DNA from: Hyaloraphidium curvatum SAG 235-1
Lineage: Eukaryota > Fungi > Monoblepharomycota
Assembly: GCA_025558095.1 (NCBI GenBank)
Contig: JAIVFI010000043.1
Location: 379,877-443,876 of the forward strand
Reading direction: 5' to 3'
DNA length: 64,000 nt
Numbering within the stretch: position 1 is the stretch's first letter; the number at the start of each line of letters is the position of its first letter. Positions 20,852 to 33,466 of this stretch are shown piece by piece. Position numbers and translations under genes: made by a program. A model generated the notes under the pieces. It had not been told where the DNA came from and did not search any database. It saw only the letters and a list, made by a program, of their open reading frames with translations.

Positions 20852-22385
20852 ATGGGCGATGCGGCACCGGAGGCCGACGTGGACGACTTCAGCGGGGCGG
20901 AATGGCTCGCCATCCTCCCCGCGCCGACACCGCCGAACGGTGCGCTGTTCAGCGGCGACGTCGGCGGCGGCTCGTCCACGGCGCGCCTCGACGGGAGCGA
21001 AGTGCTGCGCGAGATGCGCCGCGTGAGCGCGCCGCTGGCGTTCTTCTTCCGCGTCACCGTCTTCGCGGCGCCGTGGGCGCGGCGCGTGGCCGTGCGGGCG
21101 GTGCTGAGCGCCGTGCCGGTCACGTGCGTGATCGCCGCCGCCGCGGTGTTCGACGACGGCGCGCGGGGCACGGCGCGGCTGGCCGCAGGGATGGCCGCCG
21201 CGTTCATCGCCATCGCCGCGTCCGTCGCCGTCGCCCTGTTCGGCTCCGTGGCACGGCTGTACGGGCGGTTCGCGGCGGGCGGCAGGGCCGACCCGGGCAA
21301 TGGCCCCGCGGCAAAGCCCGGCGAGCCGGACTACAGCTCGCACGCGCTCGCCGGCCTCGTGCGCTGGTCCGAGCTGGCTCACGCGGAGGGCGCTACAAGG
21401 AAGGACGGGCATGTCGAGGCAGGGAAGGAGGGGGCCGCCGAGAACGCAGGGCACTCGCGCCTCCTCGAGCACTGGCCCGACGACGCCTTCTGCCCGTGCC
21501 CCGCGAAATCCTGCGCCGGCCACCTCATCGGCAGCACAGCGGCGCTGGCCGTGCTCGGCCCCGTATCGCGCATGGTCCCGCTCACGGCGGCCCAGTTCCT
21601 GATCGTCTCCAACCCCACCTTCCTCTACGCTGCGCGCTTCTGGGCCTCCCCTTGGGCGCTCGCCGGCGCCGTCGCCCTGGTCGGCATCCTCGACTACGTC
21701 CCCGTCAATTTTGCCAGCACCTTCAGCCCCAACGTCGCGCTGCTCCGCCTCGCCATGCGCGTGCAGCGCCGCGCGACGTTCCTCGCCCTGCGCGGTTTCC
21801 TCGACCGCGCCGCCGCGGCGCTCGACGGCCGCGGCGCTGCCTCGTTGGACGGCCGCACGGAGCTCTACGCGCGCCTGCACTACCGCCTGACCCTGTCGTG
21901 GGAGCGCCGCGCGACGTTCGGCTTCCTCGTCTCCAACCGCGTCCTCGTTGCCACCGGCATCACCTGCACGGCGATCCCGCTGCTGATCAACCTGGCCGCG
22001 GGCCCGTGCGTGCCCGCCTACGTGCTATGCTTCGCCGCCTGGACTGTGCTGATGGTGATCACGGATCTGGTGCACGTGGCCCTGGCCAACGAGCAGATCG
22101 AAAGGGTGACGGAGCTCTACGCCCAGGCGCAGGCCGAGATCCGCGACGCTCTTTCGCGCCTTCCCCGCGGGACAGGGCACCGCGGGGACGCGGCCGCGGT
22201 CCTGGTGCTCGAGCGGCACGACCGCCTGCTGGACTCGTTCCGCGCCGAGGTTCTTCGGCTTCGTCGCCTCGTTCGGCGTGCTGCGGACCTTTTGCGCGAC
22301 CCTGCTGACCGTCGCCGTCGCGCTGTGGTCCGTCATGCGGGGGACGGTGGTGCTCACGGTGGATTCGATATGCCCGGGGCCTTGA
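20852..22385 (+). pseudogene. 7-TM membrane protein paralogous to 31991-33466, with apparent frameshift near 22247
   Basis: Shares F(S)..EWLA, H.LA...RW, CPCxxC and NxAxLxLxxR with the paralog; the conserved C-terminus RFFGFVASFGVLRT..LWSVMRG..SICP is in the +1 frame (22248-22385). Confidence 0.7.
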
Positions 22386-23040
22386 AGACGGGGGACGGAC
22401 GGACGTCGGCGTTCGTTGCCCTGGTACTGCGGTCCTTGTATTCGATTGACCCAGCCCACCCCTTTCCCTCGTCCCTGCCATTGCGTTGTCGAGGGACGCG
22501 CCCTGGCTCGCCCCAGAAGCCAGGCATCGCATGAATCCGAATCGCCTGCTCGCATTGCCACAATCCGGAATCGCCCGTGATTGACCGCTTTCCCGGGTTG
22601 AGAGGGGCGGCAAGAGTCCGGCCCGACGCCGGCCATGTGCGGGGCCCCCGTTTTCGTGGGGGACGGCCCGGCAACACCTACTGAGATTGACGGCAGGTCG
22701 GGAAGCATGCCGTCGTCGGCCCGCCACTCGGTGGCAAAGCGGCCGCAAATTTGGCCGGTCGGGTTCGGGTCGGGTCGCCCGTCGGATCTGGTTCCGATGA
22801 ACTGGGAAGGTTGCGTCATCTCACTCTGTCTCATCGTTTGGGGAATGCATTCCTGCCCTCGCGGGTGGATGAGGGTAACCTGGAATGAAGTCTAGAGAGT
22901 GTGCGGATGGTCGGTTGCCCGAGGCGTTGTCTGGCTGCGCTTCCTCGAGCGGCCGACCGGCATCACGGGCAAGGGACGTGAGGGACGTTTGCCGCCCGGT
23001 GGGTGCGGCCACCGCCGAACTCAACCACCGACAGGATCCC

Positions 23041-24359
23041 ATGAATCGCACTCCAATATCCGCGGCCGAAGCCGCCATGCCGCCGCGCAGGCGGGAGACG
23101 CTCCCCGCGGGGGCTCCGTCCCGCTCGCCGCCGGCGGCACCGCCCTCCCCGGTGTCCGCGCCCGCCGAGGGCCGCGCCCGCCGCAAGCTCTACCGGACGC
23201 TGCAGCACTCGATCGGCTCCGGCAGCCAGGGCGCCGTGCGGCTCGCGATGGGCCCGCCCGGCGTGTGCGCGATAAAGTCCGTCGAGACGCCGGCGGGCGA
23301 CGCCGATGCCGACGAGGTCGTGCGGAGGATGCGGGCGGTTTTCGCAATCAGGCCGGAGCACCCCGGCGTCGTGCGGCTGCTCGACTTCTTCCGGACGAGG
23401 AGCAAGGCGTACTTTGTCCACGAGTACTGCGCCGGCGGGGTGGGCGGTCCCCGGTTGCGGGAAGTGGCAAGCATGTGACTGACGCCGGAGTTGCAGGACC
23501 TGGCGGCCTACCTCGCCCGCAGCGCGGGGCCCGTGGGCGAGGAGGAGGCCCGCGACATCACCTTTGCCATCCTGTCGGCGCTGTGCTGGCTGCACGCCCA
23601 CGGGATCGTGCACAGGGACCTGAAGCCGGCCAACGTGCTATTGAGGGACGCCGCCCGCCCCGCAGATACCCTGTGCCTCGCCGACTTCGGCAGCGCCTTT
23701 GTCGAAGATCCGGGAGACGATGAAGAGGACCCGGAGAGGACGGTGCCGGGCGAACCGGGTTCCCCGGCAACTGTCTACTCGGGGCTGGCGTCTCCCGGAA
23801 GCAGCTCCGGTCTTTCCGGGCCGTTCCCCAGGACACGCCGCGGTTCAAGCTCGAGCTTCACCGCGATGCAGACCCTAGCAGGCAAGCGCAGTCCCCGTTC
23901 TTGCCCTCCTTCAGCCCTGACCTCTGCCTTGCAGGCACCCCCTTCTACCTCCCCCCCGAAATCATCCGCGGCCTCCCCTACGGCCCCGGCGTCGACATGT
24001 GGTCCCTCGGCTGCATCGTCTACGAGCTCCTCTTTGGCCGCCACCCCTTCCAGGTCGTCGGCAGCTTCCGGGAGCTGTACCAGCGCATCGGCCGTGCGGA
24101 CTACGAGATCCCCGTGGACCGGCCCGTCTCCCCGGACGCGGCATCCTTCATCCGCGCGCTGCTGGCAGCGGACCCCGAAGCGCGGATGTCGGCCGAGGAG
24201 GCGACCGCGCATCCCTGGATGGCCGGCGCGGCGGGAACGCGCGCGGCGGAGGGAGAGGAGGGCTACGCGGTGGTCCTGAACGAGCTGGGCGAGCTGGTGC
24301 TCGCGGACCTGGATGCGGCGGACGACAGCGGGTACCTGTCGCGCAAGGGGAGCGGGTGA
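23041..24359 (+). CDS. Ser/Thr protein kinase (CAMK-like), paralog 3 of 4
   Basis: GSGSQGAV, CAIK, HRDLKPAN, DFG, PPE; second intron is GC-AG (23882-23934); closest to paralog 2. Confidence 0.9.
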
Positions 24360-24502
24360 TGGGTGCCGCGTCGGCGTGCGGCCGGGCTGCTGTTGGCCGG
24401 CGGGCAGGAAAGAGGGGGTGTCGCGCGCGGCATGGGACCGAGAGCGTGCGGGCGTGTGTTTGCCTGCGATAAAGGATGACCATACACATTCGATTTTCCA
24501 AG

Positions 24503-25818
24503 TCAGAGCTCTACCGTATTGCAATGTCCCGGGACGAGATACCAGTAGCTATCCAAAACAGGGTATAGTACTGCTGTCTGGTCAGCGAGGGTGCACATGT
24601 TCGCACTCGCGACGCATAAGCAGTTGCCGATGACGGCCCCGGATGGATTCTGCGTCCAGGACGAGTAAGCGTAGTAGGGGACCGTCAGCCCATTGCCCTT
24701 GGCAAAGTTGTGGGGCAGGTTCGCACATGCGGCTGCGCAGCGCTGCGCACAGGTGGACCGCGGGGTGCCCGTGTCGCAGACCCAATCCGGGGCACCCATG
24801 ATGACGGGGAGGGCGCCAGAGAAGAGGCAGAGCTTGCCGGGGCCGAGGCCGAAAGAGGCAGTCTGGTCGACGGTGTTAGCCGCGTCGCCGCCGCAGGCGC
24901 TCGAGGGGCAGTCCGAGTCCTTGGTGCACGGGATGGCCACCGCCGTCGTGGAGGTGGCACGGCGGGTGGAGGTGGCACGGCGGGTGGTCGTGGCTTTCTT
25001 CTTGGACGTGGTCTTCAAGCTCTTCCCCTTGGTCGTCGTGCGCTTCCTTGTTGTGGGGCGCTTCCCGGCCGTCGTATACCGCCTGCCCGCGATGGGAAAA
25101 TTGCCCAGGTCGCTCCTAACGACCGGGTGCTTGGCTGCATTCGCGGGTCAGGGAGGGGAATGTGCGGACGCGCGGGTATCCTACCGAGCGCATTGCGAAT
25201 GGGGGCACATGCCCAGTAGCAGTAGATTGACGTCGTAGCTCCCGTTAGGTCGCACGTCGTCTCGAAGTGAATGTTGAGCGCGTTTGCCCAATCGGCGAGG
25301 TACCCGATCCTCGTGCTCTTGTCCCACGGGGTAGCGCAGCCGGGCACGCTCCCTGGCCTCGGTCCGTCGTAGCGGAAGCCCAGCGAGTTGATCGGCGTCG
25401 CCGTCGAACCAGACAGCTTGCTCCTCGGAACGGTGAGGGCATTGTAGAAGGCGTCATCGCCGTTGGGGACGCCGAGGATGCCCCTGTACGACGGCAGCCG
25501 CGACAGCGGCACGGCCACGCAGAAGGTGGTCTGGAAGTAGGCGATGGGGTTGGCCGAGGGACCGACCGGGACGCAGGAGGCCAGGGCGGCAGCGAAGGTG
25601 GCCGGCCCGCCGGGCGGGCACGGCAGACGCTCCGGCGGGCCGAGCCGGACGTCGATGTTCGTGAGCGTCGCGGGGCGGCAGCCGGGTGCGCTCGCCGGCG
25701 AGCTGAACGAGAGGAAGTACGCCGCGAGAGTCGCGGCAGACGCCGGGGCAGGTGCGCCGAGCGCGGCGAGCAGTGCGAGCGCGAGCGGCGCGAGCGGCGC
25801 GAGGCGGAGGGCGGCCAT
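24503..25818 (-). CDS. Secreted Cys-rich protein: two unknown domains joined by a Lys/Arg/Thr-rich linker
   Basis: Signal peptide MAALRLAPLAPLALALLAALGAPAPASA; one intron near 25134-25183 joins ORFs 25015..25863 and 24503..25018. Confidence 0.7.
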
Positions 25819-26477
25819 ATCGGCCGTCGACCGCAGTGTTGAAAGGAGACCGTCGCGGGGCACCGCTGACGAGCTTCACGGCCGTGCCGAAAGGAGGGTG
25901 CTCCAAACTGCGCCACGCCAAGCCAGGTGGAAGATGATGCCGAGCCAGTTGAAAGAAAACCGAACCCAACCGACGAATCGGCAGAAGCTGACGTCTAAAA
26001 CTCTCCGTGTCGAGTCTTCCGATCCATACACTGCGTTTGCGGAGACTTGGGCCGCGCCCACGGTAGTTCTTCGAAACACCAACCACCTCGAGTGCCGCGA
26101 TCTCCGCTCTGCTCACCCGCGAATAATAGCCGTTGACCCGGCTAACCCGTCCCCCCTATGATCGCTTGCGACCCATTTCGCCATCTGCGTTGTATTGCTG
26201 CTTGTCCTCCCGATGTCCTTCTCGATGAACGCTGCCGCCGAAAAGTAGGGTCCCGCAGGCATTACCGCGAACGACAAGTTGCGAAGGAGGCTCACATGCA
26301 CAAAGTGGAGCTTTGCCCTCCCTGCTTCGGGTGGCACGAAGTCGGTGAGCGGCGCGGCAGCGTCTACGGCCAAATATCCACGGATGCGTTGGACCTCGTC
26401 CTTTGCCACTAGGCGCATCTTCCCCAACCGGCCGACCCCAGCTCCTGTTTGAACTCGCCTCCGGCCCGCGCAGCACG

Positions 26478-27859
26478 ATGACCAGTAGCCTCCCTGCCGG
26501 TCTCGAGCAGCCCGCGCCCCTCCGCGAGGGCGAAGCCCCGCGCAACTGGGCCACCGTGTTGACCGGCACAAAGAAGATTGCAAAGGAGCCCCGCGCGTTC
26601 CCCGTGCGTCCGCCGCGGCCTCCTCTCGTTGAAATCGTTCTAAGATCGTTCCAGGATGATCCGCCGGAGGGATTCGTGCAGGTCAACATCAAGCGCTGCG
26701 GGATTTGGTGCGTGGCGCCGGGAGACGCTGGGAGACACTCGTGACCTGACGGCGCGCGCAGCGGAAGCGACCTGCACGTTTGGGAGGGCGTTGACATGAA
26801 TGCAAAGAAGTCCGGGTACCCTCTGCCCATGGGTGGGTGGCTCGGAAGGCGGTCCAGCGGCCCTTCGATTGAACTCCGCGCTCACCCAGTGATGGGCCAC
26901 GAGGCCTCGGGGATCGTCACCAAGCTCGGCCCCAAGGTGGACACCCTCAAGGTCGGGCAGGCCGTCGCGGTGATGCCGTGGACCTACTTCGGCCTCCTGG
27001 CCACGCACATAAACCACCCCGCCGCGCTCTGCTTGCCGCTCCCCGAGGGCGTGTCGCTGGAGGAGGGCGCCTACACGGAGCCGCTCGCTGTCGGGCTGAA
27101 CGCGGCGCGGAGGGCCAAGGTGGAGGAGGGGAGCACGGTGCTGATCATCGGCTCGGGGAGCGTGGGGCTCGCGGCGCTCGCCTGCTCGCTGGCCATGGGC
27201 GCGAAGAAGGTGGTCGTGACGGACCTGTCGGAGTCGAGGCTCGAGGCGGCGAGGAACTGCGGTGCCACGGCCACGGTCAACACCACGGGACTGGATCCGA
27301 TGGAGGCGGCTTACAAGGTCGCCGAGGCGGTGACGGGGAAGCCGTACGTCAAGGGCGAGGCGCCGCTCGGGTTCGAGGTCGGCGTCATGGAGAACGTCGT
27401 GGACTGCGTCATCGACGCGGCCGGGTTCTCGTCCTCCGTCATGGTGGGTTGCCCTGGCGTTGCGCGCACTGGATGGGAAGCTCAACCCGACCGCCTCGGA
27501 CCAGACCGCCGTCTACGCCGTCAAGCCCGGCGGCTCCATCTCCATCGTCGGCCTCGGCTCCAGCCTCCCCACCGTGCCCATCCTCTCCGCCACCATCAAG
27601 GAGGCCAACATCTACGGCGCCTTCGGGTACGGGGCCACTGGCTACGCGGACGCCCTGAAGATGATCGGGGAGAGGAAGGTTGACGTGTCGAAGCTGGTGA
27701 GCCACAGGTTGCCGATGGACAAGGTGCAGTACGGATACGAGATTTGTCACGGGACCAAGGACGGGGCGGTCAAGGTGGGTCGCCGTGGACGCGCGTTTGG
27801 GGTGCATGTGGACTAATGGAGGCCGTCATTAGGTCATCTTCTCGACGGACGAGGAGTAG
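26478..27859 (+). CDS. Zinc-dependent sorbitol/xylitol dehydrogenase-like MDR, multi-exon
   Basis: GIC|GSDLH, GHEASG, EPLAVG, GSGSVG, DAAG, LVSHRLP, VK|VIF. Confidence 0.85.
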
Positions 27860-28041
27860 CTTGACAAGGCAAACCTTGAGACAGAACATGAATCGTGTTA
27901 GCCAGTCGCCCTTACATAGAGCCCGAAAGGCAGTTTCAATCAACGAGTATCAATACCCAAGACTTGTCTCCGACGCGAGCAAACCGCCCGGCCGAGCAAC
28001 AGCACGTTCCCCTGCAGCACGAGCTCGGGAGAGTCCCGCTT

Positions 28042-28676
28042 TCAGGCGGTGCCGCCCTTCCCGTTCTGAAACGTCGGCGCAAGCCCCCCACCCGCCAGGC
28101 CGGCGGCCATCTTGTTGTCCATGATGATCTTTACGGGTGAGTTTTGGTTGTAGCGCACTTCTACCCACACCCTGGACGGAGGCAGGTCAGCGACAGGCGG
28201 GCAGGTCAGCGACAGGCGGGCCAGCAAGGCGGCCGATCTCACTTCTCGACGACGCTCGGTTCCCTCGCCGCCTTTTCCCGGGCCCGCTCGGCCAGGACGT
28301 GCCCCGGAAGGTCCACCCTGCCGTTCCGCACCCCAGTCTTGATCCTAGCCGTGTCTCCGTGCCTCCTCGGCTTGAGCAGCGCCTGCACCGACGCCGCCAC
28401 CGACTCGGCCAGCGACCTCGCGTCGTCGTCCCCGCCCTTCCACAGCGAGCGCCGGATCTTCTCGGCGAGCGTGCGCTCAATGTCCCCGTCCGATGCCGCG
28501 GCGAGCTCCGGCCGCAGCGTGCCCTCCCCGCGTGCCACTGCCCGCAGGCCGGAATCGACAACAATGTGCGCGTAGTCGTCGACAAAGTCGTCCACCGTCT
28601 CGGCGCGGGCCTGCGGGGGCGCGCCCAGCACGCCGTGCGACACCTCGCGGCGGTTGGAGGAGTGGGAGCCGGCCAT
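28042..28676 (-). CDS. Small orphan protein, paralog of 39057-39633 (2 exons)
   Basis: AET.DDF, LRP, LAERAREKA and exon 2 W.E.RYN.NSP.KI..DNK shared with the paralog; same phase-2 intron. Confidence 0.7.
28181..28218. repeat. Perfect 19-bp tandem duplication inside an intron
   Basis: ggcaggtcagcgacaggcg x2. Confidence 0.9.
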
Positions 28677-29352
28677 CGTGTCGGGAGACGGGGGTGGGTG
28701 CAAGGGCAGCGGCGGTGCGGCGTGCTCGTTTGACGCGGAGTAACCAACTCCCGAACCCTTCGATGAGGCGACAGGCACCGATGCACGGGCACAGACCAAT
28801 GGAATTCGATGCAGATTAACAGATTCTGGTATACGATCGGGATTCGGGGTGGGATTCGCGCGGCTGCCTTAATAGGGCAATTGCAGGACGCCCCGAGCTC
28901 CCGCACTGGATTCGATCGAAGCCAACGGATAGGACCAACTAGGCATTTCGTTGGCGATGAACTAACAGCACATTAGTTTACGATCCTGAGTCCGATCGGG
29001 GTCTCTTGCGCGCCTTGTCGCCGTCAAGAGCAGTCGATACCGCGCGCCCAATCACCGCGCACCCTGCCCTAGCCAGTCGTATAGACTGCGGACGCTACCG
29101 CTCACTTCAAGGAGAAGTTGATGTTCATTCTCTCTGTCATCCATCCCAACTCGACAAAACCAGTTGCCTTTCTTGCCAAACATCTTCTCAGCAACGCAGC
29201 TGCAGATCGAACGTGCTCTTCAGGTGCGCGCCACCATCTACTCGGAGGGCGACGGCGGTGACCGAGTAAGATAAGACCGGCAAGGAATTCAGTCAGTCAG
29301 ACATGGGCTGGTGGGGTTCCGCCCCGACGAAAAAGCACCCTCTCTCTCCCGA

Positions 29353-31623
29353 ATGGCCCTCGCGCGCGCCGTGCTGCATTCGCCTCTGCTTTTCGGCGTG
29401 GCCGTTCTGCTGGCAGCAGCCGTCCCGGCCGCGCGGGCGGCGTCGGTGGTCGAGGTCTCGTGCGGGCAGGAACACGCGCTCGCCCTGCTGGACAACGGGA
29501 CCGCGCTCGCCTTCGGCGCCAACTACGACACGCAGCTCGACGCGGGCAGGTCGCTGGACGGCGTCAGGCATGTCGCTGCTGGGGCGAACCACTCGATGGT
29601 GCTCTTCTCAACCGGCAAGGTGCACGTGTGGGGCTACAACTTCGACGGCCAGACCATGATCCCGGCGGCGGTGCAGAGCGGCATCGTCAAGATCATCGCG
29701 ACGGGCTACGGACACAATCTGGCGGTCACGACGGACGGCAATCTACACTGCTGGGGTTGGCAATCTAACGGCCAATGCACTTTCAACACCACGGGAAGCG
29801 ACTTTCCACGGTGGGCGTACAATGTGCAAGACGTCGCCGGCGGGTCGCAATTCACCGTCGTGCGCATGCCGGAAAACAAGGTCAAGGCATGGGGCCTGCT
29901 TCCCGCGCCGGTGCCGGACAAAATCATCGCCAAACCTGATGTGCTCAATGGCGACGTGGTGGCCATCGCCGCCGGCTACACGCACAGCCTGGCGTGGCTC
30001 AACGACGGGTCGATCGTGTCGTGGGGCGATCCAAAGGTGACCGACCTGAACGTGCCGGCGGACCTGGCGGTGCCCAACTCCAAGGTTATCTCGATTGGGG
30101 CCCGCGCGACCTCCTCGTGGGCGGTGCTCAAGGACGGCACTTTGCGGGTGTGGGGCGCGCTTTCCAATGTTCCGCCGGGGAAGTACACCGGTATGTGCGT
30201 CTCGGGACTCGGCTGGGCGCTGGGCATCACGGCCGAGGGCAAGCTCATGCCGTGGGGCGACCCGAACGCCAAGGTGCCACAGAGGATCCCTCGGGAGCTT
30301 GATGCCCGTTACGTCGCGCCGACACCCACGCCGACCGTGGTAGATGGGGACAGCGGCGGCCCGCCGATCGGCGCGATCGTCGGCGGCGTGGTGGGGGGCC
30401 TCGTTACCCTCCTTGTGGCCGCCGGACTGGCCTACTACCTGGCCCGTCGGAACCGCACCAAGTCTTCAGCGGCGGCTGAACCAGGGGTAGATTACCCGAT
30501 TAGCAACGGCGACGGAAAGCCCGAGGTTGCCACGCGTGAGTCCTTCATTTGCGATCACGGATTGGTGGATCGCTGACCTTGCCTTCCCCAGCTGTTTCGG
30601 CGGCTTCCGACGCCACAGCATACGAGACCATGGCCATGAACACGCTGGTCAAGCCGCCGTCCAAGGCGCCGGTGTCCAACGGCCCTCCGTCCAACGGACC
30701 CTCGACCCTCGCCGTTCCCACCGCCGGATCCAACGCATCCAACAATACGCCGAAGTCGCCCATGTCGCCGCGCCTGCGCATCGATCCCAAGGACCTGAAC
30801 ATCGACTACGGCGCCAAGCTCGGCGACGGCGGGTTCGGCGAGGTGTTTGCGGGGAAGCTGTTCATCACGACGCCGGTGGCGGTCAAGATCATGCGGGCGC
30901 GTGTGGACGACGCGACGCTCAGGGCGTTCGAGAGGGAGGTCACCACTTGGGAGAGCATGATCCACCCCAACGGTGAGCCGTGCTCGCGCTCTTTCGGCAC
31001 CAGGCTCTCACGTTCCGATCGTGCCGCGCACAGTCATGCCTCTCATGGCCTACACCGTGTCCCCCCCGATGCTCATTTCTCCGCTCGCGGTCCAAGGCAA
31101 CCTCCGGAAATACCTCGCCGCCCTCAACTGGCCGCAGCCCGACGGCATCCGCCTCCTGCACGGCGTTGCCCTCGGCATGTCCTTCCTGCACGCCCGCGGC
31201 GTCTTGCACGGGGACCTCAAGTCCCTCAACGTGCTCGTTGACGCCGGCGTGGCCAGGATCACCGATTTCGGGCTGGCGAGGTTCGCCTCGTGGGCGACGA
31301 CGTCGGATGCGGGGCTGCGCGGGACGCCGGCATTCATGTCCCCCGAATCGTTCGACAACGACCCGCCGAGGCCCCCGGCGGACGTGTACGCGTTCGGCAT
31401 GGTGTGCTACGAGGTCGTGTCGCGGGGGAGGCACCCGTTCGAGGAGGCGGGGTCGCTGCCGGTGCTGATGAGGATGGTGCTGGAGGGGCAGAGGCCTGCA
31501 AGGCCCGCGGGGGTGCCGGATAGGCTGTGGAGGCTGATGCAGAGGTGCTGGGTCGAGAAGCCGGAGGATAGGCCGTCGTTCGTGGAGATCGTGGGGGAGC
31601 TGGGGACGATCATTGGAGTTTGA
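29353..31623 (+). CDS. Single-pass receptor-like kinase: signal peptide, RCC1/BLIP-II repeats, TM helix, TKL kinase
   Basis: Repeats such as VAAGANHSMVL..GKVHVWG; TM IGAIVGGVVGGLVTLLVAAGLAYYLA-RR; GDGGFGEV, VAVK, HGDLKSLN, DFG, MSPE; introns 30536-30591 and 30973-31033. Confidence 0.9.
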
Positions 31624-31990
31624 CGGTACCCAGGAGCTGAAAGATTCTAGCTCGATTGCTCGGCATGGAAATAGAAACATCCCCGATGAGAGGAACTTCC
31701 ATTAGTGTCGGGGCGCTCCAGAGGGGGATTCGCGCTACGGGTCGTAGCGTCGCCCCGGGCTGCAACGCGGTTGATTCCAACGAAGCCAACAAATGGGATT
31801 CATCTGGCACTATATTGGCGACGAACTTGCAAACCATGAAGCAGCGATCCTGACTTCATCGTGGTCGGAGCGGATGGGGACCGAGACAAGCCATGCACCG
31901 AGCTTCCATTGGACGCGTCGTCGGGGAGACAGCACCAACACCTCTCGCCCTCCCGAGCGGCTCCTCCCGCGGTGCATCATCGCCGGCTCC

Positions 31991-33466
31991 ATGGCCCCCG
32001 CGCCGGACGCGCCGCTCACCTTCTCGCCGCGGGAATGGCTGGCCCTGTTCCCCGCGGCTCCCCCGAGGAATACGGGCGCGTGTGCCGTGCCGGGCGCCCC
32101 GCCGGCGGACCCGGCCGGGGCGCTGCGTGCTTCGGAGCCGCTGACGCGCGAGGCGCTGCTGGCGGCACTCTCGCCGTCGCCGCTGCTGGCGGGGATGACG
32201 CGCGCGCAGCTCTCCCTGGCGCGATGGGCCGTCCAACGGATTCGCCTGCGGTACTACCTGCTCACGCTGTCGGGCGCCATGCTCCTCGCTGTTGTGTGGC
32301 CGGCCAACGCGGCGCTGGGCAGGTTCACGCCCGGCCAGCTCGGCGTCGGCACCGCTGTTGTTCTTACCAATACGAGCGTGTCCCTCGTGAGCCTGCTTTT
32401 CATTTTCCGGGGTATTGGCGCCCGGTTCGCCTCCCCTGTGGACCTTTCGACGCACCCGCTGGCCGTCTTTGCGCGCTGGGCGCAGCTGTGCTCCGCTGGG
32501 GATCCCGGGGGCACGCTCTCCCCGCTTGTGGCCCACGCAGCTGAAGACTCGCTGTGCCCGTGCTCAGATTGCTCCAGGGACTTGCTCGCCCGTGCGGGCG
32601 CGCTGCGTGTCGCCGAGTTCGTGGCCCGCTTTTCCGCAGCCGCATTCTGGCACTTCGTGTTCCACGCGTGGATGCCTGCCATAACCCTGGGCGCCTACAC
32701 CTGGGCGACGCCGTGGGCCGCCGTCCTCTGCTGCATTTACTTTGCAATCAGTGTCGAGTTCCACGTGACCATGCTGGTCGCCGCGTCGCCCTCCAACATC
32801 GCCGCGCTTCAGCTCTCTCTGCGTCTGCACAACCGAGCCGCGGGGCTTGCGCTGAGTGACATGCTGGGCAGGTACGACCGGCTGCTCCTGGACGCCGCCA
32901 GCATCCCGGGTGACCCACGGGCGCCGGCTTCGGAGCCATACGCCCTGCTGCACGACGGCATCGCGGGCACGTGGCGACGCCGGATCAGCTCCCTCAACTC
33001 GGGCGCGACGGTCGTCTTCGCCTTCGGCATCATTATCGCCGGCACTTTCGTTGTAGGCCTCGCCTCGGGCAACTGCGTCCTCGGCCCCACCCTCTTCCTC
33101 CTCCTCTACACCGTCCTCCTGATCGCAATGGACCTCGCCAACTTCGCCGCCGCCAACTCGCACCCCTCCGCCATCGTCGCGCTCTACGCATCCGCGCGCA
33201 CCTCCCTCCTCCGCATGGGCTGCGCCGCCGCCGCCTCGGCCGCCCCCCCACCCGCGCACGCGAGGGAGCTCGCGGCGGCGCAGGACAGGCTGCTGGGCGC
33301 ATACGTCGCCACCGCGCCGTCCTTCTTCGCGTCGTTCATGGGGTTCCGGGTCAGCGCGGCGGTGTTGCGCAACGCGGCGGCGACGGCGTTCACGCTGGGG
33401 GTCGGGCTGTGGAGCGTGCTCAAGGGGGCCGGGGTGGGGTTCACGATGAACACGACGTGCGGGTGA
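31991..33466 (+). CDS. 7-TM membrane protein of unknown family (candidate GRL/DUF3537-like), intronless
   Basis: Seven hydrophobic segments, CPCSDC in first long loop, C-terminal FMGFRVSAAVLRN..LWSVLKG. Confidence 0.8.
   Translation: MAPAPDAPLTFSPREWLALFPAAPPRNTGACAVPGAPPADPAGALRASEPLTREALLAALSPSPLLAGMTRAQLSLARWAVQRIRLRYYLLTLSGAMLLAVVWPANAALGRFTPGQLGVGTAVVLTNTSVSLVSLLFIFRGIGARFASPVDLSTHPLAVFARWAQLCSAGDPGGTLSPLVAHAAEDSLCPCSDCSRDLLARAGALRVAEFVARFSAAAFWHFVFHAWMPAITLGAYTWATPWAAVLCCIYFAISVEFHVTMLVAASPSNIAALQLSLRLHNRAAGLALSDMLGRYDRLLLDAASIPGDPRAPASEPYALLHDGIAGTWRRRISSLNSGATVVFAFGIIIAGTFVVGLASGNCVLGPTLFLLLYTVLLIAMDLANFAAANSHPSAIVALYASARTSLLRMGCAAAASAAPPPAHARELAAAQDRLLGAYVATAPSFFASFMGFRVSAAVLRNAAATAFTLGVGLWSVLKGAGVGFTMNTTCG

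Follow-up and report, generated by a model that had tools for sequence, protein, structure and literature searches.

A large family of seven-helix proteins with a predicted odorant/gustatory receptor-like fold in the fungus Hyaloraphidium curvatum

Background

Does a fungus possess its own counterpart of the large odorant receptor (OR) and gustatory receptor (GR) families known from insects? The question is raised by a stretch of 64,000 nucleotides (hereafter, the window) from the genome of the fungus Hyaloraphidium curvatum, which reaches the end of a contig of 443,876 bp and contains two genes for proteins with seven hydrophobic segments. The genome comprises 31.9 Mb at 64-75% GC, and its proteins are tagged "DFJ74DRAFT ... 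[Hyaloraphidium curvatum]" in GenBank. An earlier note on this DNA proposed that both proteins resemble the OR/GR superfamily (7TMICs) and represent an undescribed, probably expanded family. Outside animals, 7TMICs have been described as single genes or small families: six each in Thecamonas and Vitrella and one per Spizellomyces species, the GRLs of two Spizellomyces species being the only fungal members in that study (Benton et al. 2020, PMC7746228). The analysis presented here suggests, with a probability of roughly 0.6, that the two genes belong to a family of about 430 members that matches the insect OR/GR superfamily in architecture and predicted fold and may consist of diversified chemosensory channels.

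Two paralogues from a large family

The two genes lie in open reading frames (ORFs) of 560 amino acids (20852-22534) and 557 amino acids (31793-33466) on the plus strand of the window:

20852 to 22385, plus strand: gene 1, with a frame break ahead of its last transmembrane (TM) segment
31991 to 33466, plus strand: gene 2, an intact, intronless gene for a 7-TM protein of 491 amino acids, with stop codon

The start methionine of gene 2 is located 10 residues ahead of a family N-terminal motif, F-x-x-x-E-W-L-A-L-F-P, and it is this conserved motif that identifies the start codons at 31991 and, for gene 1, at 20852, the same positions that had been proposed before. The two products are 31% identical (E 1e-17), and a tblastn search with 28 family members as queries detected these two family copies only in the window. 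By sequence comparison, the two loci are real paralogues of a sequence-orphan family in H. curvatum. The two ORFs lie where originally stated, but the single-frame structure of gene 1 does not hold, because its final segment is encoded in the +1 frame; the searches and the fold model for gene 1 used its frame-1 piece only. Gene 2, judged by its sequence, appears to be a working copy.

A search of the H. curvatum genome with gene 2 yielded at least 93 matches, on most contigs (87 of the 734 first-look candidates were scored). When a profile of 26 paralogues (alignment A1) was compared with 1.84 billion representative proteins, 459 matches were obtained at E<=1e-3, 412 at E<=1e-10 and 293 at E<=1e-30. 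A word-indexed protein search, run with the single sequence as well as with the profile, gave at least 2 matches; its 8,000 candidates were dominated by Ala-rich words, and it carries no weight for the taxonomic range. Nineteen of 20 sampled matches are H. curvatum proteins annotated as "hypothetical protein"; at this rate, the total would come to roughly 430 annotated models, a number of fragments included. The remaining sampled match is a metagenome cluster with a best identity of 54% to the H. curvatum genome, indicating that the family is also present in another, uncultured environmental organism. The full-length members, mostly of 470-540 amino acids, occupy full-length open frames at more than 70 loci, and each family gene is one open frame, unlike the kinase and dehydrogenase genes nearby in the window, which are split over frames. 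About one in 10 loci of the own-genome search contains stops or is split into two matches, for which introns are an alternative cause. The median pairwise identity among 110 full-length members, the set used for all conservation statistics below, is 27%; together with the location of the loci on most contigs, this value argues for an old diversification rather than a recent repeat burst. The suspected expansion is thus borne out by these counts. The family also appears to be undescribed: all sampled members are annotated as hypothetical proteins, and our literature search, which took in the titles and abstracts of the recent Hyaloraphidium papers listed, found no paper coupling Hyaloraphidium with GR or 7TMIC proteins.

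Topology and conserved residues

Family-mean hydropathy reveals seven hydrophobic segments, at approximately 85-106, 115-140, 207-232, 241-264, 338-360, 365-387 and 456-479 in gene 2 numbering. As had been noticed in the two sequences themselves, these segments are arranged in hairpin pairs, with outer loops of 8, 8 and 4 residues and inner loops of about 66, 73 and 68 residues. The mean numbers of Lys and Arg residues are 7.1 in the N-terminus, 6.6 in loop 2-3, 9.1 in loop 4-5 and 7.8 in loop 6-7, as opposed to 0.5, 0.5 and 0.1 in loops 1-2, 3-4 and 5-6, respectively, and 0.2 in the C-terminal tail, for a total of 30.6 inside versus 1.3 outside. Under the positive-inside rule, this bias predicts an intracellular N-terminus and an extracellular C-terminus, in agreement with the inverted topology claimed previously.

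Conservation is highest in the last segment (TM7b) and the tail, with mean entropies of 1.71 and 1.83, respectively, and lowest in TM1-6 (2.8-3.0). The family consensus of TM7b is R-T-x3-T-x2-T-V-x-V-G-L-W-S-x-L-R-G; the pattern given for this segment in the earlier note holds family-wide but not for the frame of gene 1 that starts at 20852, two frames having been silently joined there. G451, R460, T468, R478, G481 and C490 are each conserved in at least 88% of the sequences. The near-invariant positions include H182, D186, C189, C191 and C194 in inner loop 1, R278 and R282, C362, N389, G451, R460 and T468, and C490. Those in inner loop 1 form the family motif H-x3-D-x2-C-P-C-x(2 or 4)-C (H conserved in 99%, D in 94% and the cysteines in 98-99% of the members), which is located on the K/R-rich, predicted cytoplasmic side and is modelled with a local pLDDT of 96. 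The overall pattern of these features is above chance: it is kept in more than 100 paralogues at the low median identity given above. The previously proposed combination of CPCxxC with a nearby His is retained with respect to H182 and the cysteines, but the x2 spacing is peculiar to gene 2, with x4 in gene 1 and most members, and the second nearby His, H155, is conserved in only 49% of the members. The relevant features of gene 2 are as follows:

32534 to 32572, plus strand: H182-x3-D186-x2-C189-P-C191-x2-C194 motif in inner loop 1, near-invariant; candidate cytoplasmic metal site
33074 to 33076, plus strand: Cys362, conserved in 98% of the sequences, in outer loop 3 (4 residues); a candidate for disulfide bonding with Cys490
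33356 to 33427, plus strand: TM7b, amino acids 456-479, where conservation in the family is highest; presumed pore-lining helix
33458 to 33460, plus strand: Cys490 in the predicted extracellular C-terminal tail, 96% conserved

The N-terminal region of gene 2 contains two motifs, at residues 11-21 and 40-52 (32021-32146 in the window), namely F-x3-E-W-L-A-L-F-P, in which P21 is 97% conserved, and D-P-A-x2-L-R-x3-P-L-T. Both are modelled with high confidence, and we know of no counterpart of either; a role in trafficking or assembly is conceivable.

Predicted fold

The AlphaFold2 model of gene 2, built with alignment A1, has a pLDDT of 91 and a pTM of 0.90; the frame-1 piece of gene 1 was modelled with a pLDDT of 86. 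In the gene 2 model, DSSP assigns helices 241-264 and 270-300, 316-330 and 339-360, and 365-415, the latter being the long helix after TM6, of 51 residues, that had been foreseen from the sequence. The last helix is split into 422-445, the presumed TM7a, and 456-479. As modelled, the long cytoplasmic extensions of TM4-6 and the division of TM7 into 7a and 7b are as expected of 7TMICs. The model also pairs strand 362-364, which holds Cys362, with strand 483-485.

The best structural matches of both genes are OR, GR and Orco, and the alignments reach the end of the OR/GR chains. In the Foldseek search against the PDB, the rows with a probability of at least 0.2 consist of insect GR/OR chains only, and one OR5-Orco chain has a probability of 0.16. 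The ESM Atlas matches include a DUF3537 cluster (TM-scores of 0.55/0.61 over 359 residues) and a cluster from cnidarians (0.58/0.69); five DUF3537 clusters are also found among the language-model neighbours. Gene 2, with 491 amino acids, is within the length range of 7TMICs (~350-500 residues), and seven TM segments, an intracellular N-terminus and inner loops longer than the outer ones are all predicted. By predicted topology and fold, the family falls within the structure-and-topology definition of 7TMICs (PMC7746228, PMC9998090), and we consider a superfamily-type fold highly probable. The OR/GR-like fold proposed in the earlier note is therefore supported by AlphaFold2 modelling and structure comparison, weak Foldseek E-values notwithstanding, and none of the three observations named there as refuting it (failure to superimpose on Orco/GR, an extracellular N-terminus, a different number of TM segments) was made.

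Comparison with known 7TMICs

The H. curvatum family resembles insect ORs in the combination of a conserved TM7b with variable TM1-6, but has no detectable sequence similarity to the insect proteins, for which several structures have been solved (Orco, 6C70; MhOR5, 7LIC; Gr43a, 8JM9; BmGr9, 8VC1; AaegOR10, 8V02). Unlike the insect receptors, it has an outer loop 2 of 8 residues, an N-terminal region of about 84 residues with its own conserved motif, intronless genes and a fungal host. To our knowledge, neither a cytoplasmic His/Asp/Cys3 motif nor a conserved outer cysteine pair occurs in insect receptors.

The closest parallel by host is provided by the GRLs of Spizellomyces punctatus and S. 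palustris (SpunGRL1 and SpalGRL1), which likewise come from early-diverging fungi, have a 7TMIC-type topology and retain no more than one position of the TM7 motif of GRs. These are single genes in their genomes and were found by similarity to GRLs (Benton et al. 2020, PMC7746228), whereas the H. curvatum family numbers about 430 and lacks a sequence link to known 7TMICs; the two are set apart here by the published description. The plant DUF3537 family (PF12056) is similar to the H. curvatum family by predicted structure and language-model neighbourhood, the structural match standing alone, with no match of the hidden Markov model (HMM) above 25 bits; plants have 4-12 copies (PMC7746228) as opposed to hundreds in H. 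curvatum. The Class-B PHTF-like 7TMICs are recorded in Chytridiomycota and Blastocladiomycota, the only fungi mentioned in that connection (Himmel et al. 2023, 10.1101/2023.08.30.555482), and have an enlarged TM2-TM3 inner loop of more than 300 residues, in contrast to the inner loop 1 of about 66 residues in H. curvatum.

Proposed function and alternatives

By analogy with the solved ORs and GRs, the subunits would assemble, probably as tetramers, into ligand-gated cation channels, in which the conserved TM7b would line the pore and the hypervariable TM1-6 bundle would form an intramembrane ligand pocket. The location of the pocket inside the membrane is suggested by the outer loops, which are too short for a ligand. 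The family as a whole would then constitute a diversified repertoire of environmental chemosensors. The simplest reading of the near-invariant His/Asp/Cys3 cluster of inner loop 1 is a putative structural zinc site (zinc knuckle), and Cys362 and Cys490, both predicted to be extracellular, might form a disulfide that staples outer loop 3 to the C-terminal tail. We rate the parts of this scheme differently: that the proteins are ion channels seems slightly better supported than the opposite, the chemosensory role is proposed tentatively, and still more speculative is the possibility of a non-animal, independently built chemosensory repertoire of insect scale on the 7TMIC fold, in which some 430 channels would be tuned to different environmental chemicals, with a zinc/redox module coupling gating to the internal state.

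The principal alternative, which we consider rather unlikely, retains the 7TMIC-type fold but assigns it another role, either in the recognition of viruses, parasites or self versus non-self, or as a channel of intracellular membranes or a lipid/ion transporter that is gated by metal or redox via the cytoplasmic Cys/His module. The fold alone is silent on function, and the near-invariant cytoplasmic motif suggests regulation from the inner side; moreover, the plant DUF3537 and PHTF relatives are without a shown chemosensory role (PMC7746228, PMC9998090). Chemoreceptor families are, however, marked by just this combination: divergent paralogues that number in the hundreds, variability in the TM bundle, conservation of the pore helix and a share of dead copies. 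The outer loops, of merely 4-8 residues, count for such another role at first sight, but solved insect ORs and GRs hold the ligand within the TM bundle, so that short loops are compatible with sensing.

Other results bear on the fold itself and weigh against an OR/GR-like assignment. The Foldseek E-values are 0.24-1.5 with TM-scores of 0.25-0.42, and the entire PDB search was weak (E>=0.17), the OR/GR chains standing out by the 'prob' column alone. Pfam 7tm_6, 7tm_7 and DUF3537 remained unmatched at E<=10 in 26 members, Pfam scans of both window proteins returned nothing relevant, and a sequence-profile search of the PDB produced no OR/GR, chance matches only; a search of the whole genome with Pfam DUF3537 and 7tm_7 found no match either and is uninformative given that the controls were silent as well. 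The GR TM7 motif T-Y-h5-Q-F is absent, with at most the Thr having a possible counterpart, so the family is no GR in the narrow sense. A model of four copies of residues 255-491 scored 0.59, 0.01 and 0.12, which speaks neither for nor against a tetramer. These negatives would suit an unrelated, lineage-specific 7-TM family, the likeness of which to OR/GR comes from a common helical-bundle arrangement or predictor bias. We regard such a convergence as improbable. Insect receptors lead the structural matches, and sequence similarity to known GRL/DUF3537 is not demanded by the structure-based definition (PMC9998090). Finally, non-functional ORFs or a repeat or transposon-borne gene could be suspected in a GC-rich genome with long spurious ORFs on both strands, the more so as the genes are intronless and multi-copy. 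This suspicion is already effectively refuted by the residue-specific conservation among highly diverged paralogues, the number of full-length open loci, the confident models and the lack of near-identical copies, the next DNA match to gene 1 having 67% identity.

The frame break in gene 1

Gene 1 is divided between two frames:

20852 to 22249, plus strand: frame-1 part, amino acids 1-466, with the N-terminus and TM1 to TM7a
21470 to 21514, plus strand: H207-x3-D211-x2-C214-P-C216-x4-C221, the family motif in its commoner spacing; these columns are invariant in alignment A2
22244 to 22250, plus strand: frame break, 7 nt between the conserved blocks of the two frames
22251 to 22385, plus strand: +1-frame part, with the conserved TM7b and an extracellular tail ending C-P; stop at 22383-22385

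The ORF that starts at 20852 matches the family up to S-F-R, ending at 22243, and continues with an unrelated tail to 22534; the last helix, F-F-G-F ... L-W-S-V-M-R-G ... C-P, begins at 22251 in the +1 frame, and this part is 56-68% identical to the C-termini of the closest paralogues (P0023, P0059 and P0065). These have 8 codons where gene 1 has 7 nt, so that about 17 nt are missing. An assembly error was rejected because contigs from three runs labelled with the same organism (X1, X2 and X3) agree with the assembly at the break, X1 with a depth of 236 and zero differences over 21944-22600. An intron was rejected as well, given that conserved residues of the two frames are just 7 nt apart.

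A contig from a freshwater metagenome of 2024 (run X4) spans 22069-22261, differs by one substitution in 193 nt and has 18 extra nt exactly at 22247. Since the next-best DNA match in the genome is at 67% identity, this contig represents a gene 1 allele rather than a paralogue. In frame 1 of this allele, the sequence remains paralogue-like for six more residues and then runs into TAG, with the last helix again in the +1 frame; both alleles of gene 1 are thus out of frame. Programmed +1 frameshifting was weighed, given that TM7b remains open in the +1 frame of both alleles, but no signal in its favour came to light, and the simpler explanation is a young pseudogene. The difference at 22247 would be an indel polymorphism at a dead site or, with lower probability, a trace of recoding. 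Gene 1 is probably a young pseudogene with a still undecayed TM7b; it would have lost its frame just ahead of this helix, a recent death as expected of a receptor family that evolves by birth and death.

Genomic neighbourhood and other loci

The genes between the two 7-TM genes in the window are of different kinds:

22885 to 24359, plus strand: protein kinase domain over three frames (Pfam Pkinase pieces 4-83, 85-146 and 158-263)
24503 to 25018 and 25015 to 25863, minus strand: two ORFs with no Pfam match
26796 to 27816, plus strand: zinc-type alcohol or sorbitol dehydrogenase (ADH_N, ADH_zinc_N) in two overlapping frames
29311 to 31623, plus strand: immediately upstream of gene 2, an ectodomain of RCC1 repeats (PF13540, E 1e-41) plus a TM segment and then, in different frames, a Tyr/Ser-Thr kinase domain (E 1e-38)

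The distribution of the first kinase domain over three frames indicates that this gene has introns, unlike the adjoining 7-TM genes. The region upstream of gene 2 resembles a receptor-like kinase gene that an intron or a frame change has divided. Of the two minus-strand ORFs, one is Cys-rich and has a start rich in Thr/Ala, and the other has a signal-like hydrophobic N-terminus; both may encode secreted proteins.

In four of 30 fetched loci, a second member is present within about 1.5 kb on the opposite strand, suggesting that the family is partly organized in convergent or head-to-head pairs:

L004, 3023 to 4435, and L006, 2682 to 3968, minus strand: second members
L021, 3088 to 4479, and L023, 2838 to 4271, plus strand: second members

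Two further loci, L009 (G000:C30:69217-70380) and L010 (G000:C48:24766-25929), have equal scores on different contigs and one in-frame TGA each; they may represent a duplicated segment or an alternative haplotig with a dead copy. An environmental relative was observed at positions 237-1208 of L031 (JGI metagenome 3300043314), where 323 amino acids were called beside an SNF2-like gene.

Implications

A repertoire of about 430 seven-helix members is of a size so far reported from animals only, and a family of hundreds in a culturable fungus with a compact genome would be the largest such non-animal repertoire that we found reported. For the annotation of H. curvatum, this means that some 430 "hypothetical proteins", roughly 2% of the genome, gain a structural assignment. 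Both the Cys/His cluster on the predicted cytoplasmic side and the pair of outer cysteines add to the fold in ways that can be tested, and the many intronless, easily cloned genes would offer access to ancestral 7TMIC sensing and gating. If the interpretation proposed here is true, massive expansion of the 7TMIC fold would be no animal invention, and H. curvatum would become the first microbial model for 7TMIC diversification and pre-animal sensing.

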